Shown here: positions 23,648 to 64,000 of the stretch, piece by piece | Position numbering within the stretch: the first letter of the stretch is position 1 | Layout of the letters: every line of letters begins with the position of its first letter | IMG/VR virus record: IMGVR_UViG_3300047472_000309 | Coordinates: 62,001-126,000 of that record | Direction: 5' to 3' (one strand) | DNA length: 64,000 nucleotides | The notes under the pieces: generated by a model | What the model saw: only the letters and a program-made list of their open reading frames with translations | Told to the model about the DNA's origin: nothing | The model's database searches: none | Position numbers and translations under genes: made by a program

Positions 23648-25477
23648 ATGGCATTGAATTTGAATGACCTCGCTTACCCGTTTGATCCCACGGGCTCGCT
23701 TGCGTCGAACAAGATCACCAACGAGCAGCAAATCCTGACGGCGGTGAATTGGACCGATTACCAGATCATCGTGCCGCGCTGGGCGCCGTTCTTTGACGCA
23801 AGTGTGAGCCTGACCATCACGGACGCCCAAGGCAACGTCACGCCGCTACAACGCGGTAAGGACTGGTATCCGTGTTTTGAATTTATCTCCGCCTCGCGCG
23901 CCTGCGCCGCCCCCATCTGGGGTGGCATCCAGTTTGTCAATCCGCTCCTGGCTGGGGTGGTCAAGGTCAGCTATCAGACGCTCGGCGGCATGTGGACGCT
24001 GGATGAGGCAGGCGTCTCGGCCCTGCTTGCGGATCGTACAGCTAATCCGCGAATCACAGCTTGGGAGCAAGTCGTCGACCAACCGGTGATGTTCCCGGTG
24101 ATCGATCACGAGTGGGATCTCGTGGACATGGTCGGGGCGACAGACCTGGTCAACGCACTCGGCGACATCGAAACCGCATTGCGTCAAACGGGTTCCACGG
24201 GCCTGGCGGCCCACTTGGCGGACTTCACCAACCCGCACCGGGTAACGGCCACGCAAGTCGGCCTGGGTAATGTACAGAACTACGGCATCGCGCAAGCGGC
24301 TGACCTGGCAGCTGGGACGAGCAACAGCGTCTACATTACGCCGGGTGGCGTGACGACGATGATGAACGCGGGTCCGAATGCAGCGATTGCTGCGCACGCG
24401 GCACGTACTGACAACCCGCATGCGACCACCGCGCATGAAGTAGGAGCGTACACGCAAGCGGAAGTCGATCAGCTGCTATCGGGCTATACGCCTTCCGGCG
24501 GATCGGCAGCAGATTCGCTGCTCTTTGACGGCATGGATGCAACGACCTATCGGGACTGGGCACTCTCCACCGGCGTGGCTTCGAACTCGTCGAAGTTTGG
24601 CGGTCAAACCCCGGCTGACTTCACGGCCGCTGTGCTCGGCGGGACTGCTGCGAACGCCAATCAGCTCGCAGGCCATACCTACGCCCAAGTGCTCTCGGAT
24701 GCGTTGGCGGGTAAAGCGGCCGACACGTTTGAATTTAACGGCATGGACCCTGCCACGTTTGCGGCGTGGGTGCTCAACAATGGTGCCGCTTCGAACGCGT
24801 TGAAAGTTAACGGCATGACCCCGGCGGACTTTGCGACCTGGGTGCTGAATAACAACGGTCCGGCGGCAGACTCCAGCATGCTCGGCGGTTACACGCTTGC
24901 GCAGGTGTTGGCCCAAGCCGGTTCGGGCGCAGGCACGGCCTTTGCTCCGCAGGTGCTCTTTAATCCGACCAGCAGCGAAACCGGTACGGATTACTGGAGT
25001 GAGCTCGGTCAGATCCCGCTGCCGTCGGCGACCGACCCGGAACTCTCGGGCTACAACGATATTCGTTGGTTGCTCTCGGGCGGGGATTCGAATGGTCAGC
25101 TGGTGTCGGGTGCTTACCTGATCTGCTTTAACATCCGGGGACCCTCGGGCAGTCAAGTGACAATGAGCGTCACCAACATGGTGGCGAGCGATCCGGGTGC
25201 CCAGTTTGGCTACACGATCGAGAACGTCACGGTGGGCGGCACGGCTGTCCCGACCATTCGCGTCTGGATGAAGACGGGTCCGAACCTGAACGCCTACACG
25301 GTCACGCAGCTCTCCGATGATTCGTCCAAGCTCGTGACGAATAGCCGGGTGGCGGTGGCGCCTGCCAGCATCGTCTACGCGACGACGGATCGGTTTGCCC
25401 TGGAGTCAGAAGTCGTCAACATGGTGGACACACTGACCACATTGTTCAACCAGCTGGCCGCTTCGATTAGCAGCTGA
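23648..25477 (+). CDS. Tail fibre/baseplate-attached protein with NPH motifs and about 25-aa repeats
   Basis: N-terminal YPFDPTG domain paralogous to the next gene; NPH.VTA.QVGLGNV motifs; six FxG.xxA.F/Y...L repeats. Confidence 0.75.
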   Translation: MALNLNDLAYPFDPTGSLASNKITNEQQILTAVNWTDYQIIVPRWAPFFDASVSLTITDAQGNVTPLQRGKDWYPCFEFISASRACAAPIWGGIQFVNPLLAGVVKVSYQTLGGMWTLDEAGVSALLADRTANPRITAWEQVVDQPVMFPVIDHEWDLVDMVGATDLVNALGDIETALRQTGSTGLAAHLADFTNPHRVTATQVGLGNVQNYGIAQAADLAAGTSNSVYITPGGVTTMMNAGPNAAIAAHAARTDNPHATTAHEVGAYTQAEVDQLLSGYTPSGGSAADSLLFDGMDATTYRDWALSTGVASNSSKFGGQTPADFTAAVLGGTAANANQLAGHTYAQVLSDALAGKAADTFEFNGMDPATFAAWVLNNGAASNALKVNGMTPADFATWVLNNNGPAADSSMLGGYTLAQVLAQAGSGAGTAFAPQVLFNPTSSETGTDYWSELGQIPLPSATDPELSGYNDIRWLLSGGDSNGQLVSGAYLICFNIRGPSGSQVTMSVTNMVASDPGAQFGYTIENVTVGGTAVPTIRVWMKTGPNLNAYTVTQLSDDSSKLVTNSRVAVAPASIVYATTDRFALESEVVNMVDTLTTLFNQLAASISS

Positions 25478-25567: not shown

Positions 25568-27061
25568 ATGACGCCGCTTCTCATTCGGTATCCGCTGGAC
25601 CCGACGGGCGTAAGCCCTAACAATCTGGTCACGGGCGAAATTCAAAACCTGACCGCTAACCGTAATGTGCGCGCAATCGCGCCGTTCTACGGAGCCTTCT
25701 TTACCGAGTCGCTGGTCATCACGGACATGGCGACCAACCAGCCGCTCACCACCAGCCAGTACTATGCAGCAGAAATGTACGAGCTGCCGACCGCGCGTTA
25801 CGGTAAGGAGATCTGTGCGGTCATCCTGATCACCGACCCCACGGTCAGCAATCAGGTGTCGCTGCAGTATCAAACGCTCGGTGGTCCGTACGGTACCTCC
25901 GCGCAAGCGATTATCCAGCAGATCGAAAACCTGCAACTGGATACCCGGCCGGTGGCCTGGGGTGATATCCTGGGTCGTCCGAGCGCGTTCCCGCCTGCGT
26001 TCCACTTGCACGACATTGGTGACGTGTACGGCTTCGAGTACTTGGTGCATGCGATTGACCGTCTGCGCGACGCGATTGAAGTGGGCGATAGTGCTCAGTA
26101 CGATCAGATTTACGCGTACATCGATCACGTGCAGCAAGTGCTGCAAGCGGAAATCGATTCGGGTAATACTGCTTTCAACGCCCACTTGACGGACTTCAAC
26201 AATCCGCACAAGGTCAGTGCTGCACAGCTGAACGTCTACACCAAGCCGCAGGCCGATGCGATCACCACGCCGATCAATACGGCCGTGACCAATCACATCG
26301 CCAACCGGAACAACCCGCACGGCGTGACAGTCGCGCAGCTCAATACGTACGATGGCCCGACCATCGACACGAAGATCGCCAACGCGACCAATGCCGTGAA
26401 GATCGGTTTCACGCCGGTGCAGCAAGGCGGTGGGGCCAATCAGGGCAGCAACAAGATCTATCTGGGCTGGGATGGTTCGCGCTTGCGCCTGCAGGTGGAC
26501 TCGACCGACATCGGTGGCATCGTGTCGTACAGCGAGCTGCAATCGAACGTCAGCAATCTGCAGAACCAGATCAATGCGCGGGTGGTGATCGGTAACACGA
26601 TCGCTTACACGGGGATTAACCAGTCGGTGAGCTTCTGGGACGTCACAGCCAACGGCACGCTGTACTCGGCCCATGACATCTGGGCCTTCTGGTCCGATGA
26701 ACGCCTGAAAGAGAACATTCGTCAGATCGAGCTGCCGTTGGAGAAGATCCGTCAGCTGATGGGTATTCTCTACACCCACAACCAGCTTGCGCATGACCTC
26801 ACGGGTTGCGATACCGAAACCGAGCATATGGGTCTGCTCGCGCAGCAAGTCTTCGCCGTGTGTCCGCAGTTGGTCGGCCCAGCACCGTTTGACCTGGTCT
26901 ACGACGACGAGGGTAACGTGATTCCGGGCGTGTCGAAGTCGGGTGAGTTCTACATCACGATCAAGTACGATAAGCTCGTGGCCTTGCTGGTCGAAGGGGT
27001 CAAGGCTCTGGACGGTCAGGTGCGGGATCACGAAGCGCGCTTGCAAGCACTGGGGGTGTAA
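25568..27061 (+). CDS. Tail fibre with C-terminal intramolecular chaperone (peptidase S74)
   Basis: YPLDPTG N-terminus, NPH motifs, GFTPVQQGGG, WSDERLKENI...GLLAQQV...YDKLVALLVEGVKAL. Confidence 0.85.
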   Translation: MTPLLIRYPLDPTGVSPNNLVTGEIQNLTANRNVRAIAPFYGAFFTESLVITDMATNQPLTTSQYYAAEMYELPTARYGKEICAVILITDPTVSNQVSLQYQTLGGPYGTSAQAIIQQIENLQLDTRPVAWGDILGRPSAFPPAFHLHDIGDVYGFEYLVHAIDRLRDAIEVGDSAQYDQIYAYIDHVQQVLQAEIDSGNTAFNAHLTDFNNPHKVSAAQLNVYTKPQADAITTPINTAVTNHIANRNNPHGVTVAQLNTYDGPTIDTKIANATNAVKIGFTPVQQGGGANQGSNKIYLGWDGSRLRLQVDSTDIGGIVSYSELQSNVSNLQNQINARVVIGNTIAYTGINQSVSFWDVTANGTLYSAHDIWAFWSDERLKENIRQIELPLEKIRQLMGILYTHNQLAHDLTGCDTETEHMGLLAQQVFAVCPQLVGPAPFDLVYDDEGNVIPGVSKSGEFYITIKYDKLVALLVEGVKALDGQVRDHEARLQALGV

Positions 27062-42643: not shown

Positions 42644-43804
42644 TTACTCCGTGGTCTGGAACTTACGAGCCCGATGCAGTTCGATGGAGAATGCCTCGGG
42701 GTTCTTTTCGATCTCAGCCCACGTGGTGTGGTCGGGCACAATCGCGGGCAAGGTGAGATTCACACGATGTGAGTCCCCATCGACTAAGAACATACCGATG
42801 GCGCCTGCCCACTGTCCCACGTACACCTGTGGGATCTTTTCAAAGCGCGCAATGCTACTGAGCTTAAGGAGCTCGCCCGCTTGCCCGAAGAATTCCACGT
42901 TCACCCAGCCCGGTTGTAGGTCGAACCCTTCCTCGATCACGACCTTCCACTTAGGCTTACCGTCCGGTGGGTCCAGATACACCGTAGTGGTGCCGTAGGC
43001 GCTCTCAGTGGGCTCGCAGACGTCAGCGGCATAGCCGGTACAGTCGTAGGCGCCGACGACGCCCTTGACCAGCAGCGCCAGCCCACGACCGGCTGAGCAG
43101 GCGTCCTCCATTTCGAACTGGTAAGACACTTGCGGCTGCAACTCGAGCCAGTCTGCATCCATCCAGAAACCGATCGGCTCGGCTTGCGTGAAATACGCCA
43201 CCAGCGAGGTGACAAATTCGTCTGCTTCCAGATCGAGCTGATGGCCCTTGCGATCGAGCACGGCCGACACATGCACAGGCGTAAGCTGGACAACACGCAG
43301 ATTACCGCTCTTGATATTGAGCGTACCTGAGAGCTCCATCTCCAATCGCACATACATCTCTTCAGCCATCATGCGCTGCAGAATCGGCGGTCGCGACTCG
43401 ACCGTAGTCCAGGTCGCCAGCTCCGTGAGACCGATCACAAACGGAATGCGCTTGTTTTCGATCGCCAGTTGACAGAAGTCCGTTTGCGAAGCGGGCACGA
43501 ACCGGGCATCCGCCACATTCAACCCGATGGCCGAAGTCACCACCTTTTCACAATCGGGCAGCTTGAACACCACGCCGTACAGGCGCGGGTTCGTCGGATC
43601 AATCCCCCAGCTCGGGCGAATCACTTCTTGCGCGACAAGCTCTTCACTACGTGCCAATCCCGTGAAGGGGATGTTCACGTTAAAGCGCAACGCCGACGTG
43701 TAGACCGTGATGTGCGAGGTGAGGGCTTCTGCTTCGCCGAGATTGTACTGATCATCGACAAAGTGGTAACGGTTAAAGGGGGTATGCAGCGGTAGGATTT
43801 TCAT
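42644..43804 (-). CDS. Hypothetical protein, 386 aa
   Basis: ORF with purine-rich RBS. Confidence 0.7.
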   Translation of the reverse strand: MKILPLHTPFNRYHFVDDQYNLGEAEALTSHITVYTSALRFNVNIPFTGLARSEELVAQEVIRPSWGIDPTNPRLYGVVFKLPDCEKVVTSAIGLNVADARFVPASQTDFCQLAIENKRIPFVIGLTELATWTTVESRPPILQRMMAEEMYVRLEMELSGTLNIKSGNLRVVQLTPVHVSAVLDRKGHQLDLEADEFVTSLVAYFTQAEPIGFWMDADWLELQPQVSYQFEMEDACSAGRGLALLVKGVVGAYDCTGYAADVCEPTESAYGTTTVYLDPPDGKPKWKVVIEEGFDLQPGWVNVEFFGQAGELLKLSSIARFEKIPQVYVGQWAGAIGMFLVDGDSHRVNLTLPAIVPDHTTWAEIEKNPEAFSIELHRARKFQTTE

Positions 43805-52679: not shown

Positions 52680-53249
52680 TTAGGCCGCCACTGCTACTTT
52701 TTTCTTGGACAGCAGTTGCAGCCAACGCTTGAACCAAGGTGTTCGAGCCACCTCGTTAGGCGGTGTGTACACATACAATGCTTTTAGAATTGCTTCCACC
52801 GTAGCGAGGTAGAGCTCATCGGGAGCACTGGCAGTATAGAAGCCCGGACTAATGACCATCGCGCCAACGGCAGGAGCTATGTCATAGTAATTAAAAGGTT
52901 CACTGTGACGCTCGGTGCGACTGTCTTCGCCAAACAAGCGATCTTTCGCGTCCTTGACGAACGACTCATCGCAGGTTAGCGGGATGACCGTGTTCTGGTA
53001 AAAGGTTCGGCTCTCCTCCGTACGAAGTGATTCATACCACGCCTGGTGGATTCCCCAGGTCCCAATGTGAAGATCACCACCCACAAGATGGGTAGCAAAT
53101 TCTTGCACAATCAGGAGGCCAGCCATATCAGCAGGCGCACAAACACGACGGATCTTCTCGAAATCGAGCATGTCCGCCAAATTCATCTTGTTACGATGAA
53201 TGGAATCGGCGATCCAGTAAGGGACCACCACAATCTTTTTTTCGGCCAC
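52680..53249 (-). CDS. Hypothetical protein upstream of the capsid gene
   Basis: GTG at 53249 with GGGAG RBS. Confidence 0.65.
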   Translation of the reverse strand: MAEKKIVVVPYWIADSIHRNKMNLADMLDFEKIRRVCAPADMAGLLIVQEFATHLVGGDLHIGTWGIHQAWYESLRTEESRTFYQNTVIPLTCDESFVKDAKDRLFGEDSRTERHSEPFNYYDIAPAVGAMVISPGFYTASAPDELYLATVEAILKALYVYTPPNEVARTPWFKRWLQLLSKKKVAVAA

Positions 53250-53463
53250 GGTTGATGCTCCCAATGATGGGTCAGATGTTAATTTTGAAGCCGTGTGCCT
53301 AGAGTATGTACAGGGGACGAAGCAGATCCCTCGACAGCAGGCATACGCAAGAATTCCTTTACCCGAGATTAGTCGTTCTGCCACAACATAATCATTTTCA
53401 TAGAGATGATAGTGGTTGACGGGGACCAAGCCTCTTGGGGATAACTACCATTAACGCGCAGAA

Positions 53464-55017
53464 ATGAATAACCGACTCCTTTTGGTGAATGCAATCACCC
53501 TGCTTTACCGCGAAAGTCAATTGCCACCGACGATGGAGCGTAGCCAGAATCTGGTCCGCAACATTGTGTCCACCATCAAGATGCCTGAGGTGAACCTCAC
53601 GCTTGATCCTGAAACCGAGACGCTTGCGGGTCTGAAGAGCTGCGCACTGGCAATGTGCGACACGCCGCAGGACCATCAGTACGAGCCGCTCGAAATCATG
53701 CAGCGCATGAAGGTGGTCTGTGGGGAAGACCAAGCGATGTATGAAGCGTTTGAACAAGGTATTAGCTCGGAGCTGCAAGAAGGCTCGCTGAAGCGTACCT
53801 GCCTGAACATCCGCCGTACGTTGCAGAATTACTTCCGCGAAGAGAAGGTCAAAGAGATCTTGCACCGCGCAGGCGTCGCGGTGAAGTTCAACCGTGAGAA
53901 CATCACGGACATGAAGCAGTTCGTCGCCGAAGTGTGTGCCGAGCTGGAGCCCTATCAGCAAGATGCCGTCACCAAAGATCCGGCGATTGTCTCACACGTC
54001 TCGTTTAGCAACCTGGACTCGATGGCCGAAGTGTTTAAGGACATTCAGCAAGAGTCCAACGGTAACTCGATTTTGCGCACCGGCTGGCAGGGCATTAACC
54101 GCATGCTGCGCGGAGGCTTCCGCCGTGGCGAGCAGGTGGTGATCGGCGCGCTGCAGCACAAGTACAAAACGGGCTTTACGCTGTCGATCTTCAAACACCT
54201 GGCACTCTACAATGTGCCGGAGATGATTGATCCGACCAAGAAGCCCTTGCTGTTGCGGATTTCGTTTGAGGACGACATCAACAACAACATGCGTTTCCTG
54301 TATACGTCGCTCAAGGAAAACGAGACCGGCGTCGCGGTGACTGATAAGGAACTCGAAGGGGCAGATCCGCAAGAGATTGCGGCGTACGTGAAGGAGAAGA
54401 TGGGGGTCAATGGTTATCACATTGACATGCTGCGGGTGGACCCGACCAAGTGGTCGTACATGGACATCTGCAACAAGCTCATCGAGTACGAAGCGGACGG
54501 CTACGAAATCCATGCGCTCATCGTCGACTACCTGTACATGGTGCCGACCACCGGTTGCTCGCAAGGCCCGGCCGGTCACGACGTGCGCGACATGTTCCGT
54601 CGGATGCGTAACTTCACCAACCCGCGCAAGATCACCTTTATCACGCCGCACCAGCTCTCCACCGAAGCCAAGCAATTGGTGCGCGACGGCAAGACCGACT
54701 TCGTGAAGGAAATCGCGAACAAGGGCTACTACGCCGGTAGCCGTCAGATTGACCAGGAAGTGGATCTGGAACTCTACATTCACATTGAAATCGTGAATGG
54801 CCAGTCCTGGCTCACGGTGCAACGCGGTAAGCACCGGATTGTGGGACAGACCCCGTTGATTGATCAGTACTGCGTGCTACCCTTCCAACCGGTTGGGGGT
54901 ATTCTGGACGATCTGAACGGGCCGGACACGACGCGCCGTAAGGTGGGCGGGGGTCCGATTGGTAGTACCGATGAAACGCCGTGGTTTGCAGCGCTGGATG
55001 ACCCTTTGCAACTCTAA
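53464..55017 (+). CDS. dnaB: DnaB-like replicative helicase (phiKZ gp118-like)
   Basis: TGWQGINRML.GGFRRGE, variant Walker A GALQHKYKT, ISFE, IVDYL, HQLS, IDQEVD, RGKHR. Confidence 0.88.
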   Translation: MNNRLLLVNAITLLYRESQLPPTMERSQNLVRNIVSTIKMPEVNLTLDPETETLAGLKSCALAMCDTPQDHQYEPLEIMQRMKVVCGEDQAMYEAFEQGISSELQEGSLKRTCLNIRRTLQNYFREEKVKEILHRAGVAVKFNRENITDMKQFVAEVCAELEPYQQDAVTKDPAIVSHVSFSNLDSMAEVFKDIQQESNGNSILRTGWQGINRMLRGGFRRGEQVVIGALQHKYKTGFTLSIFKHLALYNVPEMIDPTKKPLLLRISFEDDINNNMRFLYTSLKENETGVAVTDKELEGADPQEIAAYVKEKMGVNGYHIDMLRVDPTKWSYMDICNKLIEYEADGYEIHALIVDYLYMVPTTGCSQGPAGHDVRDMFRRMRNFTNPRKITFITPHQLSTEAKQLVRDGKTDFVKEIANKGYYAGSRQIDQEVDLELYIHIEIVNGQSWLTVQRGKHRIVGQTPLIDQYCVLPFQPVGGILDDLNGPDTTRRKVGGGPIGSTDETPWFAALDDPLQL

Positions 55018-55023
55018 CTGTTT

Positions 55024-55049
55024 CCCTGTAGTACCTCCCCTGTAGTACC
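55024..55049 (+). repeat. 12-bp direct repeat
   Basis: ccctgtagtacc at 55024 and 55038. Confidence 0.8.
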
Positions 55050-55106
55050 GCTAGGTGTGACACTTGGGCCTGACCAGCCCAGGTGTTGCCCTAGCCTTTT
55101 ATGCCG
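55050..55106 (+). terminator. Hairpin + TTTTATGCCG element
   Basis: gctagg..acacttgggc..gcccaggtgt..cctagc ctt ttatgccg. Confidence 0.7.
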
Positions 55107-55192
55107 CTCCAATGCCAGTAAAAGAATCGAGCCGAAATAGTTATGAATCCATTTTTGGTCCGCTAACTATACACCGACTCTCAGGGGTGCGA

Positions 55193-57286
55193 ATGTTCTC
55201 CGGTTTTAAACGCCTAATCGGCTCCATCGACGTCTTCGAGGATGAAAAACTCATCCATATCGAAGGCTTGCCTGCCGATGTGATTGCCCGCGACATCACG
55301 AAAATCTGGTCTACCAGCAAGATCGCGATGTTCATGTTCACCAAGATGGGACGCTCAAGCGTTGCGTTCAACAAGTTCTTTGCCCCTGACATCGTCTACA
55401 CCTTTGAGACGATCATCAAGCTGCGTAGCCGCAACTATAATAACCGCGCGCTGCAAAAGATCGTCGACCTGATGTACGAGAACACCTGGCTCAAGAGCGT
55501 GCGGGAAGCCTCGCACCCAGCCATTCTGGATTTCAGCCAGCTCGATGAACTGAATGTGAACCTGCTGCCCCATCAGGCAGAGTTCCTCCAGCTCTATAAC
55601 GAGATGGTGCCGCGCATGAAGTTGAAAGGCTATGTGCTGGCCGCCGCCCCTGGCTCGGGTAAGACCATTAACTCGATTGCGCTCGGCTGTGTACTGAATG
55701 CCGATGTGTTTATCGAGCTGGTACCGAAGCCCGCGGTGGATGAGGTGTGGGATAAGACGCTGCGCACCCTCTTTAAGAAGCCGGAGAATCACAAGTACTG
55801 GACCACGCTCTCCGGTAAGCCGCTTGAGTGGGGTTATCGCCACTACGTGTTCCACTACGAGCAGCTCCCAAAGGCGATCGAGTTCTTCAAGCAACACCAG
55901 CACAAGCTCCGTAAGCCGTTCATGATCGTGGACGAGTCCCACAACCTGAATGAGCTCGATAGCCTGCGCACGAACCTGTGGATCGATCTGTGCAAGGTAA
56001 CTGACTGCCAGCACGTGCTGCCGATGTCCGGTACGCCGATGAAAGCCATCGGGGCGGAAGCGATTCCGATTCTCACGGTGCTGTGCACGGACTTTAATCA
56101 GGACGCCCAGTTGCGCTTTAAGGAGATCTTCGGTAAGAACTCCGTGCGCGCGAACGACATTCTGCGTAACCGCCTTGGACAGATGATGTACAAGGTCGAC
56201 AATGTGGTGGATAACAACCGCAAGGAGATCCAGAAGAACATTGAGATGCCCAATGGTGGTGTCTATACGCTTGACGCGGTGAAGGACGTCATGAAGGCGT
56301 TCATTACCGAGCGCATGGCCTACTACCAGGCGAACTTCAAGGGCTTCCAGAACATCTACTACACGGCCTGTGGGATCTACGAACGCACCCTGCGTGATGG
56401 TCCTGCCAAGAACGAGTACAAGAAGTACCAGGGCTACATCAGCCAGATCATCCAAGGGTACGACCCGAAGACGATGAAGGACATGGTGATGTTCTGTAAC
56501 AAGTTCGAGAAGCAGAAGATCGCCCCGTGCTTGCCACGCGACCTGAAGATCTCGTTCCTGGATGCCCGCTCGGTGGTGAAGTACATGGACTTGAAAGTCC
56601 AGGGTGAAGCCTTGGGTCGGATTTTGGGTAAGCTACGTGCGCAGTGTCACGTCGACATGCTGTCCTACGTGGGGATGCCGGAGCTCATTGATGGCTCGAT
56701 GTCCAAGACGCTGATTTTCACGTCCTACGTGAATGTGGTCAAAGCCGCGGATGAGTATCTGCAGAAGGAAGGCTATCAGCCCTTGCTCGTCTACGGCGAA
56801 ACCAACAAGGACCTGAAGGGCATCATCAAGCGCTTTGATGAGGACGAGGATCTGAACCCACTGATTGCAACCTTCGATTCCTTGTCGACTGCCGTGCCGG
56901 TGCTTTCCGCGTCGACCATGATCAACCTGAACGCGCCGTTTCGGGACTACGAGTACAAGCAGGCGATTGCACGGATCGATCGGATTGGTCAGAAGTTCCC
57001 CTGCACGATCTGGAATGTGTTTCTGGATACCAAGGGTGTGCCCAACATCTCGACACGCTCGAACGACATCCTGAACTGGTCACGGGAAATGGTCGATTCG
57101 ATCATGGGCACGAGTAGCGCTGGGTTGGATCTGGCGCTGGAAGCCTTCAGCTTGCAACAGAAGGCCGATCGGTACGAGCTGGCGATGGAAACGTTTAACG
57201 ACGGGGGTACCGAAGGCGACGACGAGAAGGTCGAGACTGGTAGTATCATCGTTCAACCCAACTGGATGTCCTGGTCATCTAACTAA
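55193..57286 (+). CDS. SF2 (SNF2-like) helicase, probably virion-packaged
   Basis: APGSGKT, IVDESHN, MSGTP, QAIARIDRIGQ; C-terminal ALE/AME sites; start MFSGF at 55193. Confidence 0.88.
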   Translation: MFSGFKRLIGSIDVFEDEKLIHIEGLPADVIARDITKIWSTSKIAMFMFTKMGRSSVAFNKFFAPDIVYTFETIIKLRSRNYNNRALQKIVDLMYENTWLKSVREASHPAILDFSQLDELNVNLLPHQAEFLQLYNEMVPRMKLKGYVLAAAPGSGKTINSIALGCVLNADVFIELVPKPAVDEVWDKTLRTLFKKPENHKYWTTLSGKPLEWGYRHYVFHYEQLPKAIEFFKQHQHKLRKPFMIVDESHNLNELDSLRTNLWIDLCKVTDCQHVLPMSGTPMKAIGAEAIPILTVLCTDFNQDAQLRFKEIFGKNSVRANDILRNRLGQMMYKVDNVVDNNRKEIQKNIEMPNGGVYTLDAVKDVMKAFITERMAYYQANFKGFQNIYYTACGIYERTLRDGPAKNEYKKYQGYISQIIQGYDPKTMKDMVMFCNKFEKQKIAPCLPRDLKISFLDARSVVKYMDLKVQGEALGRILGKLRAQCHVDMLSYVGMPELIDGSMSKTLIFTSYVNVVKAADEYLQKEGYQPLLVYGETNKDLKGIIKRFDEDEDLNPLIATFDSLSTAVPVLSASTMINLNAPFRDYEYKQAIARIDRIGQKFPCTIWNVFLDTKGVPNISTRSNDILNWSREMVDSIMGTSSAGLDLALEAFSLQQKADRYELAMETFNDGGTEGDDEKVETGSIIVQPNWMSWSSN

Positions 57287-57297
57287 GAGAGCAAAAC

Positions 57298-59427
57298 ATG
57301 AAACGACGCATGAGCCTGGAGAGCATTGCTGCTCTGGGTATGGAATCCTTCGACTCGTCCCCCACAGGCAATGTTCAGCCGACGATGCAGGGCGAAACCC
57401 CGGAGCAGCCCCTCATCACCGCAGGCTACAACGAATCACCCTTCAGTGGTTCGGAGAACTATGCAGCGGAGAAGCTGGCCCAGCGAGTCAAGGAAGCCAT
57501 CGAGAAGCCGCTCTTTCCGGTGCGCTACGCTTCGGAAGCTGACGCCATCGTGGTGGACGACGATGAATTCGACGCGCTGATTCGTTCCTCGACAGCTGCC
57601 ACGTCGGTCTGGGACGACGACAGCCAGGTCTCGCTTGAAGCCAAGGACAGCAACAAGCTGGCGGTCGCCAAGAACAAGCTGCACGGGCGCTTTAAGAAGA
57701 TGTTTGAGGGCTGGAAAGATGGCTGGCGCACCATGCCCGGTCTCATCAAGAAGTACGAGGCACGGCTCGCCGAGCTGCAGAAGGAACTCAACGGCACGAT
57801 CATCCGCGGCCCGCTCGATGTGAATCTCTCGGGCCTGTGGCAGCACTTCTCCAACGACGCCGGTCCGATCCACAACAACTTCATGCACAAGGTGCAGGAG
57901 GACTTGGCGTTCTCGAGCTATATCCTCGGCGACTTCTCCAAGGAAGCGATGGCTCAGCTGCGTAAGCTGGAGATGGCCCTGCACACGGGTCAAGGCAACT
58001 CCGACGAAGAAGCCAAGCGCACAGCACTGGATCTCGAGAAGCTCGAAGCCCCCTCGATGTACCTGGACCACAAGTGGATGTGTGTCTCGGGTGAGCAACC
58101 GTATCTGTCGGTCACGGGTATCTACGCCAACCAAGGGCGTGTGCCGCGTCCCGTGGCGATTGGTGGCATGTCGATGGAGAAGCTCGCCAAGATGGCGATG
58201 CCGTTCCATGTACGCGAGTACGGCTCATTCCTGCACGGCATGAAGAAGCTCTTCGTGAACGGTAGCAAGGCGAACGTGCGTTTGACTGAGAACGATCTGG
58301 AGAACCTGCTCAAGGCCGGTCAGACGTACCTGGAAGGTGCGCGCAGCTACATGGATAACTACCATAACAGCTGGCCGATCTTCCGGCGTATTGACGAGTC
58401 GCTTGAGCTGATCTGGAAGGACTTCGATCTGACGGACTACTCGATCACGCTGGGCGATGAAGAGGACGAAGACGCCGTGGAAATCAGCTGGCAGACGTCG
58501 GGTACCGGTGACGTGACACGCCGCGCTGCCCTCTACGACCAGATCCTGATGGTGGTGCAGAACTTCGCCGACTCAGTGGTCGCACCGGGTAGCCACGAAG
58601 CGCATCGCGCGGTGCGGGCAGCGAAGTTCCACTGCTACTTGCTCGAGGCTGCGCTGAAGGCCGCGAAGTCAGCGGCGATGGAAAGCGAGAGTCTTGCGAT
58701 GGAAGCACGCGGCTTTAAGGGTCTGCAATTGGCTCAGGAGTTCTTCTGGAACAATAAGCCTCACAAGCCTGAGGAATACGTGGCGCCTAAGTGGAAGGAC
58801 ATCCCGAAGCCGCAATGGGACCCGAAGCACCCGCCCTCAATCGCTGAATCGGTGAAGGCCCTGCGTGCTGCTATGCAAGAGCACGATCCCGAAGCTCTCA
58901 AGACGTTTAATCGTCCGGCGACTCCTCAGGAGCTGCAAAAGCTCGAAGCCCTGGTCAAGCAACACACCGGCAAAGGTTTGCCCCCGCAATTGGTCGAGCT
59001 GTACAAGATCTCCAATGGCGGTGTGGATAGCTACCGCCACCTGCGTCTGTTTGACTTCGATGATTTCATGCCGATTCAGCAGGTCATCCAAACCTACGAG
59101 TTGTTCTTGCACTTGACCGAGAATGACTGGGCGGGTGACGAGTCGGAGATTGAAACCGGTATGCAAGGCAAGCGGTATTGGGAACCATGGTGGATTCCCT
59201 TCACCGCCAGCGGTAGTGGCGACCATTTCTGCGCGGATGTGAATCCGGGTGGCGGTGGGCAAACTGGTCAGGTGATCGACTGGTGTCATGATTACCACGC
59301 TCGTCGGGTGGCTGCCCCGAGTATTGCAGCATTCTTGGCGATGTCGATTCATCGTCAGTTATACCTGATCCAACACAAGAAGGATTGGGACGCCAAGAAC
59401 GGTGGCGGGCAAGCAGCACAGAAGTAA
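57298..59427 (+). CDS. Internal head protein fused to a C-terminal SMI1/KNR4 (SUKH) domain
   Basis: SLE, GME, SLE, AME, AME sites; C-terminal PAT.QEL.KLE...LP..L.ELY..SNG...WIPF..SGSGD.FC.D..PG..GQ.GQVI.W.HD......APS...FL. Confidence 0.8.
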   Translation: MKRRMSLESIAALGMESFDSSPTGNVQPTMQGETPEQPLITAGYNESPFSGSENYAAEKLAQRVKEAIEKPLFPVRYASEADAIVVDDDEFDALIRSSTAATSVWDDDSQVSLEAKDSNKLAVAKNKLHGRFKKMFEGWKDGWRTMPGLIKKYEARLAELQKELNGTIIRGPLDVNLSGLWQHFSNDAGPIHNNFMHKVQEDLAFSSYILGDFSKEAMAQLRKLEMALHTGQGNSDEEAKRTALDLEKLEAPSMYLDHKWMCVSGEQPYLSVTGIYANQGRVPRPVAIGGMSMEKLAKMAMPFHVREYGSFLHGMKKLFVNGSKANVRLTENDLENLLKAGQTYLEGARSYMDNYHNSWPIFRRIDESLELIWKDFDLTDYSITLGDEEDEDAVEISWQTSGTGDVTRRAALYDQILMVVQNFADSVVAPGSHEAHRAVRAAKFHCYLLEAALKAAKSAAMESESLAMEARGFKGLQLAQEFFWNNKPHKPEEYVAPKWKDIPKPQWDPKHPPSIAESVKALRAAMQEHDPEALKTFNRPATPQELQKLEALVKQHTGKGLPPQLVELYKISNGGVDSYRHLRLFDFDDFMPIQQVIQTYELFLHLTENDWAGDESEIETGMQGKRYWEPWWIPFTASGSGDHFCADVNPGGGGQTGQVIDWCHDYHARRVAAPSIAAFLAMSIHRQLYLIQHKKDWDAKNGGGQAAQK

Positions 59428-59441
59428 GCAGTAAGCGTAGC

Positions 59442-59480
59442 GAGGGAGCGGCTCGAGAGGGCCTGCTCCCTCTTATGCCG
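59442..59480 (+). terminator. Hairpin + TTATGCCG element
   Basis: gagggagcggc..gcctgctccctc t tatgccg. Confidence 0.75.
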
Positions 59481-59542
59481 TAGTTTTATCGCCCCGTGCT
59501 GAATCTTATAGAACTTCTCTCAAACCCTTTATTGGTCCCACT

Positions 59543-60283
59543 ATGAGCCAAACCGACGAGCTGGCACAATGGCTCGAGACTGTGCCCGAAAAAGTTCGTA
59601 AGAACGTGTCGATTGTGACCCCGGTTGAAGTGAAGCAAGACTTCTTCCTGCACATTTCCACGGCCACGAACATCAAGAAGTTTATCCCGTTAATTGGGCG
59701 CCGTCAGGCTTATAGCGAGGATCGTACCGTCCCACGCGTAACGGTGGCTCCTACGCTGCTGGGGTGCTTGATCGGCTACGCGAAGGCCGACCATGACTTT
59801 CGCGAGTACCATTCCACGGGTAAACCCGAACACGGTAACTACAAAGGCGGCTGGAAGATTTACGCGCTCCCTTTCGAAGCAGCCTTAAAACCGAATGCGC
59901 GCATGGTGTACGATGCGCAAGCAAGCGACGAGCACTGGCTGGTGTCGTACTCACGGGAAACCAACGAGTACATCCCGCAAGCGGCGGGTAAGATGTTCTA
60001 CCGGTCACTGCGCCTGATCGGTCGCTCAGGAAAGAAGCCTGCCGGGGAGATGGAGTTGTATGTGGAAGTTACAAAAGAAGACGGGCTTCGTTTTAGTAAG
60101 TCCCACTTCCTCAATCCCGGCTACTACCGCGTGGTTGGACCCGTGCAAGAAAACGTCGCCAGCTGGAAAGACGATAGCGAGTATGTGGTCACCCCCATCG
60201 ACAAGGATGACTACCTCTCCGCCAAGAACGCAGCCGCCGACCTCTTGGGATTCAAAGATCCCCCACCCCATCAGCAGTGGTAA
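59543..60283 (+). CDS. Hypothetical phage protein (possible ART-like fold)
   Basis: LHIS...F.P...EDRTVPRVTVAPTL.GCL...EHW; the fold assignment is a guess. Confidence 0.55.
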   Translation: MSQTDELAQWLETVPEKVRKNVSIVTPVEVKQDFFLHISTATNIKKFIPLIGRRQAYSEDRTVPRVTVAPTLLGCLIGYAKADHDFREYHSTGKPEHGNYKGGWKIYALPFEAALKPNARMVYDAQASDEHWLVSYSRETNEYIPQAAGKMFYRSLRLIGRSGKKPAGEMELYVEVTKEDGLRFSKSHFLNPGYYRVVGPVQENVASWKDDSEYVVTPIDKDDYLSAKNAAADLLGFKDPPPHQQW

Positions 60284-60286
60284 GAA

Positions 60287-61009
60287 ATGAAAAAACCGAC
60301 CTACCTGGAATGGGCGAATTCGCAGATTCGCCCGGTGGCACTCGAAGCACTGGTGCTCGAAGAGCTCGCCCTGGAAAAGGAAGCCACTTTCGACGAAGTG
60401 TATAAGAAAAGTGGCTGGATGAAGAAGATCGGCATGAAGCTGGTCAGTCTGTTTGGCTATGTCCCTGACCTTGCCTTCCAAAAGGAAGACGTGGACATGC
60501 ATGTAGTCCAGCAGATACTCCAGCACAAGGAGCTGCTCCAAGCGGTCTCGGACTGGATCTCGGACACCAACTACGAGTTGCTGCCCAAGCTTCATGAAGC
60601 CAAGAAGGTGTTCGAAGCCATCCAGCGACCCAAGCCCCATCCGATTCTGTACCGGGGCTTCAAGATCAATCCGGGCCAACAGAATTCGGGGATCGCTGAG
60701 CGCTACAAGCAGATGAAGCCGGGTGACAAGTGGCAGCATACTCCGGATAAGCCCATGTCTTTCTCCTGGCATCAGGGGACCACGCGCGCATACGGCGACA
60801 TTATTGTCAGTGCGAACTATAACGCGCTGGCTAAGCGCTGTCTGCACATCACCAACGAGATGGTGGCGGCGCTCTTTCATCTGGACCTGGACGGCAACAT
60901 CGATCCTAACTACGAGATGAAAGCCGAGGCGTACATCTTCACGTACGCTGAGAGCGTGTTCCTGCCTGACGGCAAGCCGATCGAATTCACCCTCGTCTCC
61001 AAGGGTTAA
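60287..61009 (+). CDS. Putative R-S-E ADP-ribosyltransferase with a head-protease-type propeptide
   Basis: ALE...ALE N-terminus; LYRG, MSFS and a late Glu (YAESV) in canonical order. Confidence 0.55.
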   Translation: MKKPTYLEWANSQIRPVALEALVLEELALEKEATFDEVYKKSGWMKKIGMKLVSLFGYVPDLAFQKEDVDMHVVQQILQHKELLQAVSDWISDTNYELLPKLHEAKKVFEAIQRPKPHPILYRGFKINPGQQNSGIAERYKQMKPGDKWQHTPDKPMSFSWHQGTTRAYGDIIVSANYNALAKRCLHITNEMVAALFHLDLDGNIDPNYEMKAEAYIFTYAESVFLPDGKPIEFTLVSKG

Positions 61010-61030
61010 TCCTTTTCACATTGGACCAAC

Positions 61031-62266
61031 ATGAAATCCTTTAACATGCGCGCCGCGCTCGAAGCGCGCCCGATTGAAGACCAAGATCTGGAAGACACCG
61101 CCAAGCCTGCGCCGGACGCAGGTCAGATCGATGGCGACACCACGACGCTCTCCGGCATGGCCAAGCCCGGTCAGAATCCGGTGCCCGATACGGAAAACGT
61201 CGCTACTGAAGGCACTGAGAAGATCGATACGCGTCCGGTGGATCTGGACGATGTCGTCTTGCTCGAGCAAGATCGCCGCGCCTTTGAGCCGCAGTCGGAA
61301 GGCAGTGCTGAGCACGATGCGATCAACGCGCAGAACATCGCCCAGGAAGGCTGGATCAGCAAGAAGTTCGAGAATGTCAAGGACTTCTTCATGCATCGTG
61401 AGAAGGAACTCGAAGATGGCCACACAGCCACCAAAGAGAACCTGGAAGCGATTGCGCGCCTGCGCACCAAGTTGCAAGTACGCGCGGGTGAAGTCACCCG
61501 CGATGCGGACACCGTCACGATCAGCAAGTACGCCAAGTGGCTCTCGATCGACGGCAAACACATCACCGATCCCGCGCGACTGATTCGTGAACTGCAACGC
61601 GTCTACGAGCTCGTGCAATGGTCGGGCAATCTGGATAAAGCCTGGCTCGAGGGCTACAAGTTCGTGGCGGACCAGATCTGGAAGCTCGGCGAGACGGACC
61701 TGAAGAAGGCCAACGAGAATCTGAAGAAGATGTGGGAAGTCACGCGGCCGCAAGGCGCCGAGAAGTGGCTCACGGTTAACAAGCCGGTCCAGTTCAAGGG
61801 CAAGGAATACATCGACAAGCATTCGCCGTTCTTCCTCGGTCAGTGGTGCGTCTTTGAGATCTCCCAAGAAGAAGACAACCATGCACCGGGCGGGATTGTT
61901 GAAATCCAGCGCATGAAGTCGATGAAGGCTGTCGGCGGGGGTGAATTCCCGGCGTTGACCAAGGCCCAGATGAAGCAAGTGCTCGACATCTGTGAAAAGA
62001 TCGAAGCGCATCTGGTGTCCATGACCTTCGATGGCCGCATCATCGATCGTTATCTGGACGCGCTGGATGAATTCGCGTATCGCTATCGCAACTTCAAGTC
62101 GCTGTCGCGCGAAGACCAGACACTCGCTTCGCGTCTGTATGCCTGGGGCCAGCTCATCATGCAGCACGACACGACTTTCCTGCCGACGGCTTTTAGCAAC
62201 CACCTGGTGAAGGTGATGTTGAGCTACGTCGAGAAGTCGATGCGTCGCATTGAAGTCGATCAGTAA
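61031..62266 (+). CDS. Internal head protein
   Basis: Acidic propeptide with ALE, ATE and AQE-G sites, followed by the amphipathic helix GWISKKFENVKDFF. Confidence 0.7.
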   Translation: MKSFNMRAALEARPIEDQDLEDTAKPAPDAGQIDGDTTTLSGMAKPGQNPVPDTENVATEGTEKIDTRPVDLDDVVLLEQDRRAFEPQSEGSAEHDAINAQNIAQEGWISKKFENVKDFFMHREKELEDGHTATKENLEAIARLRTKLQVRAGEVTRDADTVTISKYAKWLSIDGKHITDPARLIRELQRVYELVQWSGNLDKAWLEGYKFVADQIWKLGETDLKKANENLKKMWEVTRPQGAEKWLTVNKPVQFKGKEYIDKHSPFFLGQWCVFEISQEEDNHAPGGIVEIQRMKSMKAVGGGEFPALTKAQMKQVLDICEKIEAHLVSMTFDGRIIDRYLDALDEFAYRYRNFKSLSREDQTLASRLYAWGQLIMQHDTTFLPTAFSNHLVKVMLSYVEKSMRRIEVDQ

Positions 62267-62278
62267 AAGGAGTCCCTC

Positions 62279-63601
62279 GTGGAAGAAGTCAATCAAGAAG
62301 CGACGATCGTCACCCTGAGTGATGACGTCGAATGCAATCGCCTGAACGATGCGCTCGATAAGCTGGGCGAGTTGGGTACGCGACTGCAAGCAGACGGTCA
62401 ACTGACAGTCGACGTGGCGCTCGAACATCAGGCCCTCACCGGTAGCAATACCCTGGTGAATACCTACTACAGCACGCTCGGCAAGCAACAGAAGCTCAAA
62501 GTGGCTCAGGAAGGCCTCTACGAGCAAGCCAAGAGCCTGCTGAAGAAGGCGATGGACCTGCTGTGGGAAATGATCGTCAAGGTCTGGAAGTGGCTGCAAA
62601 AGCTCTTTGTGAATGGCGTGCCCATGACCGAAGCAGCCCTCGCCCGCGAGAACGAGAAGTTTAAGTCCTTCGTGATGCCGGTGCAAAAAGCCGAACGGGT
62701 TCCGAGTTCACGCACTGCCATCATCCAGGCTGTCCGGGAAGAAGGCCTGAACGAAGCGTTCGTGAGCAAGCTCACTCCGGAAGAGATGGACATCTACAAC
62801 GAGGGTCCGTACCATCAGGCAGTGCAGCGCATGATTCCGGCGCTGGATGGCTTCAATGTGGCGAGTGTCGTCGAGACGCTGGTGAAGTGGCACGAGAAAT
62901 GGTTGCCTGCCGGTCGCCAGTTTGATCAGGACAACGCAGGGGCTGATCCCCATGCGCTTCAGGACAAGCTGGAACGCTTCCAGAAGGACGCTCAGACCGA
63001 TCTGGAGCACGCGACCTCCATGGCTACCAAGCTCATGCAGATCCGCCTGGAGAGCTACCAGACGGCTGTGGAAGCCCGTCGAAAACTGAAGGTCGATCCG
63101 AACTTCCATCTCGGTACCGATCTCTCGGGCATCATGGCGCGTGGTGTGCGCATCTACGACCAGTCGGGCTACAAGAAGATGGGTTCGGCCCTGACCGATG
63201 TCTTCAAGTCCCTCGACTCAACGGTCAAGAAGATGGAGTCGATTCGCACCAAGGCCTACCAGAATCCGATGCCCAACGACCATGGCGGGGCCAAAGCGGG
63301 CGAGGAGTGGATCGAGCAGATCTACATGAAGGAAGTCAATCGGATCATTTCGACGCTGCATCAGTGCGTCTCGATGATTCAGTTGATCAACAACTACTAC
63401 TCGTTCGTGGTTGGCTCGGGCAAAACCATCATGAAGTACGTGATGACGGTGGCGCAGAAGGCCATTCAGCACGGTGGTGATGCTGCCTCGCTGCAAGAAA
63501 TCGTGCGTAGCGGTAGTTCGGCACTGATGGGCATGGCTGCAGATGGTTCGCAAATGGCAGCGCAGCAACAAGCTGCCGGTATGCAAACCGACATGGGTTA
63601 A
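62279..63601 (+). CDS. Internal head protein
   Basis: GTG start with AGGAG RBS; ALE and AQE-G sites, followed by an amphipathic helix (KKAMDLLWEMIVKVWKWLQKLF). Confidence 0.7.
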   Translation: MEEVNQEATIVTLSDDVECNRLNDALDKLGELGTRLQADGQLTVDVALEHQALTGSNTLVNTYYSTLGKQQKLKVAQEGLYEQAKSLLKKAMDLLWEMIVKVWKWLQKLFVNGVPMTEAALARENEKFKSFVMPVQKAERVPSSRTAIIQAVREEGLNEAFVSKLTPEEMDIYNEGPYHQAVQRMIPALDGFNVASVVETLVKWHEKWLPAGRQFDQDNAGADPHALQDKLERFQKDAQTDLEHATSMATKLMQIRLESYQTAVEARRKLKVDPNFHLGTDLSGIMARGVRIYDQSGYKKMGSALTDVFKSLDSTVKKMESIRTKAYQNPMPNDHGGAKAGEEWIEQIYMKEVNRIISTLHQCVSMIQLINNYYSFVVGSGKTIMKYVMTVAQKAIQHGGDAASLQEIVRSGSSALMGMAADGSQMAAQQQAAGMQTDMG

Positions 63602-63619
63602 GCGTAAACGACGCTAGAA

Positions 63620-63658
63620 CGGCATACGAGGCCAGGGTTTCCCCTGGCCTCTATGACG
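63620..63658. terminator. Bidirectional CGGCATA-hairpin-TATGACG element
   Basis: cggcatacga ggccaggg tttc ccctggcc tc tatgacg. Confidence 0.78.
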
Positions 63659-63661
63659 CTG

Positions 63662-64000
63662 TTACTGCGGGGTCAGTGGACTGATCGTCACGATCCACTC
63701 ACGCGTATTGGTGAAGTCAAACGCGCAGTCCAGGACGATGTGTTGATACAAACAGTCTGGGTCGCTGCCGTCGGAAATCAGAATGTCAATTCGTCCCTGC
63801 TTGCCGGGGGCGAGTGAGGGGTCGTTTTGGTAAGGCAACGTCGTCAGACGCACCTGCACGATCTTGATGTACAGGTTAAAGGTGTACTTGATCAGGGCCA
63901 TGATCGAGTACGCGGTGGTTTGCGTTTGCGTGTTGGCGAGCAGCCAAGTACGCAGGCCGTCGAGATCCACGGCGGTGTCCGGGACTACGATGGGCGTCGG
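63662..64000 (-). CDS. 3' part of a hypothetical/virion protein (start outside window)
   Basis: Frame is open to the window edge. Confidence 0.55.
   Translation of the reverse strand, partial: PTPIVVPDTAVDLDGLRTWLLANTQTQTTAYSIMALIKYTFNLYIKIVQVRLTTLPYQNDPSLAPGKQGRIDILISDGSDPDCLYQHIVLDCAFDFTNTREWIVTISPLTPQ

Follow-up and report, generated by a model that had tools for sequence, protein, structure and literature searches.

An internal head protein of a phiKZ-like jumbo phage as a putative carrier for an exchangeable SUKH-1 module

Introduction

The closest described counterpart of the locus analysed here is phiKZ gp184/Tad1, whose N-terminus, like that of gp93, is wedged into the capsid and whose C-terminus, again as in gp93, is freed by the head protease and reaches the next host by injection (10.1101/2025.11.23.690004; PMC11297242 also covers cleavage and anchoring). 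Our subject is the gene for a 709-residue protein (57298..59427, + strand) in a 64,000-nucleotide (nt) stretch of IMG/VR virus record IMGVR_UViG_3300047472_000309, referred to throughout as the window, whose product resembles the internal head proteins of phiKZ and ends in a SUKH-1 (SMI1/KNR4) domain. A first-pass annotation of the window, made from the letters and their translated open reading frames (ORFs), had read this product as a head-cargo polyprotein from which the prohead protease could release an immunity domain for injection into the host. We consider it moderately probable that a phiKZ-type inner-body or ejection protein serves here as the carrier of an exchangeable SUKH-1 binding module that would be delivered against a host effector.

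What the window protein would share with gp184/Tad1 is the phiKZ-type head, a capsid-associated N-terminal part, gp175-type cleavage and C-terminal delivery, all of which, like the cassette behaviour described below, are for it read from sequence. The cargo of phiKZ is Tad1, an anti-defence Thoeris sponge, and that of the window protein is SUKH-1; Tad1 stands directly behind a short capsid anchor, whereas in the window protein the cargo follows an entire inner-body protein of PF12699 type; and the window cargo is a swappable cassette that occurs in zero to about three copies.

PF12699 ('phiKZ-like internal head proteins') comprises phiKZ gp93, gp94, gp95, gp162 and gp163 together with SPN3US gp53 and gp54 (SPN3US paralog family A). 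Its members are head proteins that are abundant, processed by the protease and ejected (PMC5694885, PMC13282480), and according to a 2026 review the genome is injected together with some inner-body proteins (PMC13282480). The background given in the first-pass annotation on the protease motif and on ejection holds (PMC10052503, PMC5694885, PMC13282480). The window protein has in common with them a homologous body, the N-terminal pattern M-x(8-14)-[S/A/G]-x-E and a propeptide end in the alignment column of gp53 E125 and gp54 E137. Canonical members end directly after the body (420-480 amino acids, aa), whereas the window protein continues into a junction and a SUKH domain.

A second precedent is T4, whose internal protein IPI* blocks the GmrSD restriction nuclease. 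T4 capsid-targeting peptides are removed by the prohead protease, the proteins are packaged and injected with the DNA, C-terminal fusions to IPIII are delivered as well, and internal protein repertoires differ between related T4-like phages in an arms race with restriction (PMC9026906). The likeness of IPI*, IPIII and Alt to the window protein lies in the N-terminal targeting peptide and the logic of head delivery; the proteins are unrelated, the T4 targeting peptide has 10 aa, and the natural T4 effectors are separate small genes and not appended domains. The Dar proteins of P1 (DarA, DarB, Hdf and others) act against restriction, become part of the head during morphogenesis and travel with the DNA (PMC12810830); they are other proteins, from a phage that is not of the phiKZ type, and are not known to include a SUKH domain or to undergo cassette exchange.

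SUKH proteins are immunity proteins, typically for linked toxins, and DNA viruses use them against host responses (PMC3113570). Polymorphic toxin systems resemble the window locus in having SUKH-1, recombination of C-terminal cassettes behind a conserved junction and several divergent SUKH domains together (PMC3113570, PMC3482391), but what is swapped in the window lineage is an immunity-type domain and not a toxin, on a virion-type protein and with no linked cognate toxin gene. The US22 family of herpesviruses and other animal DNA virus proteins are likewise recruited SUKH domains, often in tandem, that bind host proteins against antiviral responses (PMC3113570); they are SUKH-3-like, made in the infected cell, and neither phage proteins nor capsid cargo. 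Capsid-packaged, protease-released anti-defence cargo (phiKZ Tad1, T4 IPI*, P1 Dar), PF12699 carriers and SUKH immunity proteins are thus each known already. In the literature searched, nothing was found on SUKH domains in phage virions or on inner-body proteins with a cargo slot, nor on a protease-type junction at which cassettes are exchanged, with zero to about three modules and two paralogous carriers.

Results

The C-terminus of the protein is a SUKH-1 domain and its body a divergent internal head protein

The window is part of a phiKZ-like jumbo phage, taken from a 310,654-bp metagenomic contig. Its sole deposited relative is Burkholderia phage FLC9, a cultured phage of a new genus with a broad host range (B. 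glumae, B. plantarii, Ralstonia), whose capsid protein is 88% and whose counterpart of the 709-aa protein 47% identical. Megablast of the gene against deposited phages returned zero matches, and PHROGs has no family for the ORF. The parts of the gene, all on the + strand, are as follows.

57298..59427 (+), whole gene, PF12699-type internal head protein carrier with C-terminal SUKH-1 module, 709 aa, ATG start
57298..57639 (+), N-terminal targeting region or propeptide, aa 1-114, predicted disordered, with candidate sites SLE8, GME16, AAE58, ASE80 and SLE114
57337..57345 (+), GME14-16, the first conserved cleavage-type site
57631..57639 (+), SLE112-114 (QVSLE↓AKDS), predicted maturation cut closing the propeptide, placed by alignment to SPN3US gp53 E125 and gp54 E137
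57640..58662 (+), helix-rich internal head protein body, aa 115-455, from phmmer, PF12699 by way of P0016, and Foldseek
58663..58812 (+), junction, aa 456-505, made up of the last turns of the body, a linker predicted disordered (aa 473-488) and the cassette leader, from model confidence and motif density
58675..58683 (+), site 1, AME460-462 (AAME↓S), shared by the 6 closest relatives and 5' breakpoint of the cassette swap
58696..58704 (+), second AME, aa 467-469, an exact 9-nt copy of site 1, in this phage only
58732..58740 (+), site 2, AQE479-481, of the form [V/I/L/M]-A-Q-E↓[F/I/L]-F, in the disordered linker
58684..59427 (+), exchangeable C-terminal cassette, aa 463-709 and stop, DNA unrelated to that of sister contig L003
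58813..59397 (+), SUKH-1 (SMI1/KNR4) fold domain, aa 506-700, Pfam core aa 540-681 (nt 58915-59340)

The ORF, the helical body and the motifs that the first-pass annotation had listed were all found, with SLE at aa 6-8, GME at aa 14-16, SLE at aa 112-114 and AAME-SES-LAME-A at 58672-58707, where aa 459-470 read AAMESESLAMEA. The SMI1/KNR4 domain that it had proposed is real. The Pfam profile SMI1_KNR4 (SUKH-1, PF09346; cutoff 25.4 bits) matches aa 540-681 at 67.4 bits (E 2.4e-18, profile positions 1-124 of 125), and the SUKH modules of relatives score 37-100 bits on the same profile. In an AlphaFold2 model built with 37 homologues, aa 490-706 form a confident globular domain, which Foldseek matches in the PDB to the core of yeast Knr4 (6qbp/5j1b; E 3e-9, target-normalised template-modelling (TM) score 0.65-0.68, root-mean-square deviation 2.4-3.1 over ~175 columns) as well as to the SUKH domain of FBXO3 (E 1e-3) and to Listeria 2icg. 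The ratio of nonsynonymous to synonymous substitution rates (dN/dS) of the SUKH domain is 0.11-0.25, and the module is therefore under purifying selection, that is, functional; the same values rule out positive selection across the whole domain.

The same model gives aa 1-126 as disordered, with a predicted local distance difference test (pLDDT) score below 50, and aa ~130-470 as a confidently helical body (pLDDT mostly 80-97). An exhaustive phmmer search with aa 1-478 retrieved 74 proteins, which outside the immediate family are phage proteins of 440-600 aa; PF12699 is matched by 11 of 30 remote homologues, and one of the retrieved proteins, P0016, which aligns to the window body with E 6e-22, exceeds the PF12699 cutoff of 27 bits with a score of 40.6 that spans positions 8-355 of the 387 in the profile. 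Membership of the window protein in PF12699 is thus transitive and statistically solid, the body being a divergent member. Foldseek against BFVD returned 61 body matches at E <= 1e-3 with modest TM-scores (0.25-0.6), among them predicted structures of virion proteins verified by mass spectrometry (MS) and of annotated internal head proteins, from 201phi2-1, Psa21, Noxifer, PhiEaH1, RP12 and many others, and a PDB fold search with the body gave only generic long-helix matches (E > 0.1). The head-targeting carrier supposed by the first-pass annotation hence corresponds to a PF12699-type body behind a propeptide whose end aligns with MS-mapped sites.

The SUKH cassette is gained, lost, multiplied and swapped at a conserved junction

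The immediate family has 14 members at 90% clustering and, more distantly, P0021. Across these 15 relatives the carrier bears none, one, two or about three SUKH modules. Four members have the core and a C-terminal SUKH, as in the window protein; five, including FLC9 gp96, accession BDD79615.1, carry a second SUKH between an invariant NYAAE and [S/A]xE-S; and P0013 has the same insert and two weaker C-terminal SUKH-like modules (47, 17 and 24 bits). All six N-terminal inserts lie inside the propeptide region, between YAAE and [S/A]xE-S, and since the propeptide is one that is predicted to be cut off, the N-terminal SUKH of these relatives must part from the body at maturation. At the other extreme, P0014 stops just past the body, and because it lies mid-contig, has a proper stop and keeps conserved synteny it is a true SUKH-less orthologue; P0007 and P0012 also stop there, on short contigs (2.2-2.3 kb) where truncation is possible.

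Body and SUKH follow different relationships. Identity to the window protein is 98% in the body and 31% in SUKH for P0005, 96% and 68% for P0002, 67% and 84% for P0004, and 55% and 81% for P0006. At the DNA level, the window and the contig of P0005 (L003) are 98.3% identical over 53001-58682, without detectable similarity over 58683-59426, and again 97.2% identical over 59427-63900. As identity breaks at 58683 and resumes at 59427, the replaced unit is aa 463-709 and the stop, with its 5' edge at the E462 codon of AAME↓S. The replacement cassette in L003 is a bona fide but different SUKH (75 bits), and all crossover points between relatives fall within the junction, aa 456-505. Between the window and P0002 the synonymous divergence (dS) is 0.47 in the body and 1.8 in SUKH, which points to separate histories and not merely faster evolution; this gap and the sharp DNA breakpoints speak for exchange, and divergence of SUKH by fast evolution only was rejected.

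P0021 has the same junction grammar, a related SUKH and the same downstream genes on a paralogous carrier, which is 40% identical to the plain internal head protein FLC9 gp97 and only 27% to the window body. Since the same unit is found on this second carrier, junction and SUKH behave as a mobile cassette. Among ~70 remote PF12699-type representatives a local hidden Markov model (HMM) scan found SUKH in P0021 only. A profile census of fusions in a word-indexed database, taken over 8000 candidates, retrieved just the family itself, and the survey of fusions rests on the 74 phmmer representatives and the HMM scan. The modular arrangement of carrier, junction and effector envisaged in the first-pass annotation is borne out by this presence and absence, the copy number and the clean swap at AME462.

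The propeptide has conserved cleavage-type sites and the junction two candidate ones

E16, E58, E80 and E114 are invariant in 14 of 14 close relatives. E16 also occupies an invariant column across 30 remote internal head protein homologues and aligns with E15 of SPN3US gp53 and gp54, of which SLE-13 in phiKZ gp93 is the counterpart (PMC5694885). E114 falls in the same column as gp53 E125 and gp54 E137, MS-mapped maturation sites that close propeptides of 125 and 137 residues; SPN3US propeptides come off via multiple A-x-E cuts with a preference for V at P4 (PMC10052503), and P4 is V at E114 of the window protein, in agreement with the SPN3US protease logo. Because E114 aligns to mapped sites and all four glutamates are invariant, the 114-aa propeptide is predicted to be removed by a gp175-type protease. 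A motif list alone is weak evidence, since [S/A/G]-x-E is only mildly over-represented, in the whole protein (19 against 12.9 +/- 3.0 in shuffles, P about 0.03) as in the N-terminal 114 aa (7 against 3.4, P about 0.02); what convinces is the comparative conservation.

Past the last body helix, site 1 reads AME-S in the window's clade and AAE a few residues upstream in the other clade, and a variable spacer separates it from site 2. The latter is present in 12 of 12 relatives with a C-terminal module (as ALE in P0005) and in P0021, and is retained even in the otherwise unrelated DNA of the L003 cassette. [S/A/G]-x-E sites are both conserved and accessible at segment boundaries, as expected of a protease substrate. 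The conserved candidates for release are AME462/AAE and AQE481, the latter the better placed of the two, in the disordered linker. A doubled linker had been the focus of the first-pass annotation; it is present and the swap breakpoint falls inside it, but the doubling is restricted to this phage, relatives having a single AME or AAE there. It consists of an exact 9-nt direct repeat, GCGATGGAA, at 58675-58683 and 58696-58704, 21 nt apart, which one might speculate to be the scar of an imprecise exchange.

Proposed delivery and competing explanations

By homology, the N-terminal ~114 aa would target the protein into the prohead, where a gp175-type protease would cut after E114 and probably also after E16, E58 and E80, as suggested by alignment to the mapped sites; the helical body, to judge from its family, would join the inner-body or ejection-protein mass. 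The ~26-kDa SUKH module would then have about an even chance of being released in the head, at AME462, AME469 or AQE481, and would otherwise travel tethered. Either way it would enter the next host with the DNA, ahead of any phage gene expression, and, if SUKH biology is a guide (PMC3113570), bind and block a toxin- or nuclease-type effector of the host, for example a defence effector. Of these steps, packaging, cleavage at the junction and the target are ones that we infer, and aa 463-709 are an accessory module gained, lost, multiplied and swapped at a conserved junction. The accessory, swapped, purifying-selected pattern and the architecture are consistent with a head-packaged anti-defence role.

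Several observations weigh against this proposal, those on the junction being given with the alternative that they favour. A prohead protease gene was not found in the 64-kb window, and a metagenome scan with the FLC9 protease gave 14 loci without the window's contig among them. In favour of the proposal, FLC9 gp36 is 35% identical to phiKZ gp175 (E 1e-43) and adjoins virion RNA polymerase genes as in phiKZ, and gp175 homologues occur in 289 phiKZ-like phage records; a gp175-type protease would presumably be encoded in this exact genome as well. The window protein itself has no direct Pfam match to PF12699 at E <= 0.01, and the literature searched holds no virion proteomics or biochemistry for it, for FLC9 gp96 or for relatives. 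A word-indexed search with the C-terminal 220 aa alone retrieved no relative standing by itself at E <= 1e-3, and so nothing that would point to a donor or target of SUKH in cells. Finally, no polymorphic toxin gene adjoins the SUKH gene, and the linkage that marks a toxin-immunity pair is missing; the sole toxin-like neighbours are paralogues resembling ADP-ribosyltransferases (ARTs), which vary independently of SUKH content. For these two reasons we do not assign this SUKH to a classical toxin/immunity pair, and its action would be immunity-like by analogy.

Every mapped cleavage of an SPN3US substrate removes an N-terminal propeptide and none frees a C-terminal domain (PMC10052503), which favours the strongest competitor, namely that carrier and delivery are as proposed with the junction left uncut, SUKH remaining tethered and the AME and AQE motifs serving recombination or structure. 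AME462 and AME469 lie in the last helix, at its fraying end in the model and outside the most disordered part, P0009 lacks site 1, and AQE-F-F, though conserved, might simply lead into the cassette as a structural element. We nevertheless hold an uncut junction to be rather unlikely. Pooled over the family, and hence in related sequences whose counts are not independent, the motif has a density per 100 aa of 5.4 in the propeptide and 4.8 in the junction, each 2-3 times expectation. The body, at 1.9, conforms to expectation, and the C-terminal SUKH, at 0.85, falls to about half of it; no such depletion is seen in the N-terminal SUKH inserts, at 3.3. AQE481 stands where pLDDT is below 50, its P4 residue is hydrophobic in agreement with the SPN3US logo, the N-terminal SUKH of relatives sits inside a propeptide and must be severed, and the C-terminus of phiKZ gp184/Tad1 is freed by the protease (10.1101/2025.11.23.690004).

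A second alternative, which we regard as improbable, makes SUKH the self-immunity protein or chaperone of a co-packaged phage toxin-like enzyme, such as the adjoining ART-like proteins, in the producer cell or the capsid. Restraint of a co-packaged phage toxin had also been raised in the first-pass annotation, and it gains from SUKH proteins being typically immunity proteins for linked toxins (PMC3113570) and from ART-like genes with internal-protein-type N-termini flanking the gene (60287..61009). It is weakened by the failure of ART-like genes and SUKH modules to co-vary: two ART-like genes occur without any SUKH in L002, two SUKH modules occur in FLC9 and L027 where the locus lacks an ART-like gene, and SUKH is swapped while neighbours remain 100% identical. 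The ART assignment is itself only suggestive (best Foldseek E 0.04).

We give still less weight, and very little, to SUKH as a structural or assembly adaptor that binds a head component, or an envelope component of the host at ejection, and so aids genome entry or the early infection vesicle. The SUKH scaffold does accept partners of many kinds (PMC3113570), the SUKH protein Syd binds SecY, and inner-body proteins have been linked to packaging and ejection (PMC11297242); yet P0014 is a true orthologue without SUKH in conserved synteny, and the module varies from zero to about three copies with unrelated versions interchanging on near-identical carriers, a copy-number and swap pattern typical of accessory conflict modules, which makes a role in core assembly unlikely. 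That the protein is no virion component at all but a cytoplasmic late protein of internal-head-protein ancestry, as its sub-threshold Pfam match and the missing virion proteomics might allow, is hardly credible given the retained family N-terminal motif and propeptide architecture with sites aligned to mapped cleavages, the head-gene neighbours (capsid protein, gp203 orthologue) and the fold matches to MS-verified virion proteins.

Neighbouring genes

Among the products encoded in the window are a major capsid protein of phiKZ type (PF25620, E 3e-197), several structural proteins of the virion, subunits of RNA polymerase and a divergent DnaB helicase, and genes for tail and baseplate are present as well. 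Directly upstream of the SUKH-bearing gene, 55064..57286 (+) encodes an orthologue of phiKZ gp203 (36% identity, E 2e-153), a helicase that is processed and packaged in the phiKZ head (10.1101/2025.11.23.690004); its alignment begins at M44, and the true start is probably the ATG near 55193 and not the TTG at 55064.

Downstream, 60287..61009 (+) belongs to a family of ART-like proteins of 180-250 aa that flank the SUKH gene and are variably present between lineages, with orthologues at L003:8836-9558, L024:11269-12015, L025:12543-13268 and L002:4264-4998 and paralogues at L026:6441-6998, L024:6417-6992 and L002:2-547. Invariant [Y/F]-R-G and S-F-S and a conserved E make up an R-S-E ADP-ribosyltransferase-like signature, and the disordered N-termini match the internal-protein-type targeting and cleavage pattern M-x8-[A/S]-x-E, for example MHFIAKRTPAME. 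Atlas leads pointed, at 0.86-0.87, to DRAT, ADPrib_exo_Tox and Mod_ADP_RT; the ~40 best PDB matches in Foldseek are ARTs almost throughout, none of them significant (best E 0.04), and the neighbour has no Pfam match and no PDB sequence match. The ART assignment is suggestive, and the proteins may, by their motifs, be packaged Alt-like enzymes.

A plain PF12699-type paralogue (~477 aa, about 450 bits on a local internal head protein profile) follows the SUKH-bearing gene in four lineages, at L001:10718-12151 (FLC9 gp97), L002:2004-3422, L025:10250-11695 and L027:2850-4283, and is absent from L003, L024, L026 and the window (between 59427 and 59543), so that the SUKH-fused copy is the only gene of this type at the locus of the window lineage. 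Two further ORFs of ~420 aa lie downstream: 61031..62266 (+) starts with MKSFNMRAALEARP, matching the internal-protein N-terminal consensus M-x8-ALE-x-x-P, and 62279..63601 (+) has a weak PF12699 match (20 bits) confined to the propeptide region. hhalign of the internal head protein profile found no homology of either to the body; both probably add to the head-internal proteins with this targeting signal. A 2OG-Fe(II) oxygenase of 202 aa (L024:9821-10429; PF13640, E 2e-13) is inserted directly after the SUKH-bearing gene in the P0006 lineage, which again marks the locus as a hotspot of accessory genes.

Elsewhere in the window, 42644..43804 (-) encodes 386 aa of which aa 3-217 match positions 227-443 of phrog_3231 (major head protein; E 1e-12), and may be a truncated capsid-protein paralogue. 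The adjoining genes 23648..25477 (+) and 25568..27061 (+) are paralogous tail-fibre or virion structural genes with a common N-terminal domain (phrog_2163, phrog_13857) and different C-termini, and look like host-range modules.

Discussion

How phiKZ-like phages, nucleus-forming ones included, survive the first minutes of infection, before the genome is shielded or proteins are made, is an open question. Pre-packaged effectors are an obvious answer, and very few have been identified, Tad1 in phiKZ being one. The locus described here offers an exchangeable cargo slot, defined by sequence and validated by its evolution, on a member of an abundant class of inner-body proteins. If the proposed packaging holds, it would also be the first case, to judge from the literature searched, of the large SUKH immunity superfamily in phage virions.

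A more far-reaching possibility, to which we commit ourselves only tentatively, is that FLC9-like jumbo phages run a polymorphic immunity-delivery system, in which the stretch from AME/AAE to [V/I/L/M]AQE-F-F would be release site and recombination joint at once and SUKH domains would be shuffled onto two paralogous carriers and into a propeptide. If so, the joint would be analogous to the pre-toxin motifs of polymorphic toxins, up to three different immunity proteins would enter the host from each virion, in tens to hundreds of copies, and effectors of host defence, or of neighbouring bacteria, would be pre-empted before phage gene expression.

The idea is directly testable in cultured FLC9 on Burkholderia glumae, and the design of carrier, junction and cargo is a natural template for loading proteins into jumbo-phage heads. 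If delivery of the SUKH-1 module by its internal head protein carrier is confirmed, the junction could help to recognise other capsid-delivered effectors in jumbo-phage genomes, and an important early barrier to these phages would then seem to lie in defence effectors that resemble polymorphic-toxin domains.

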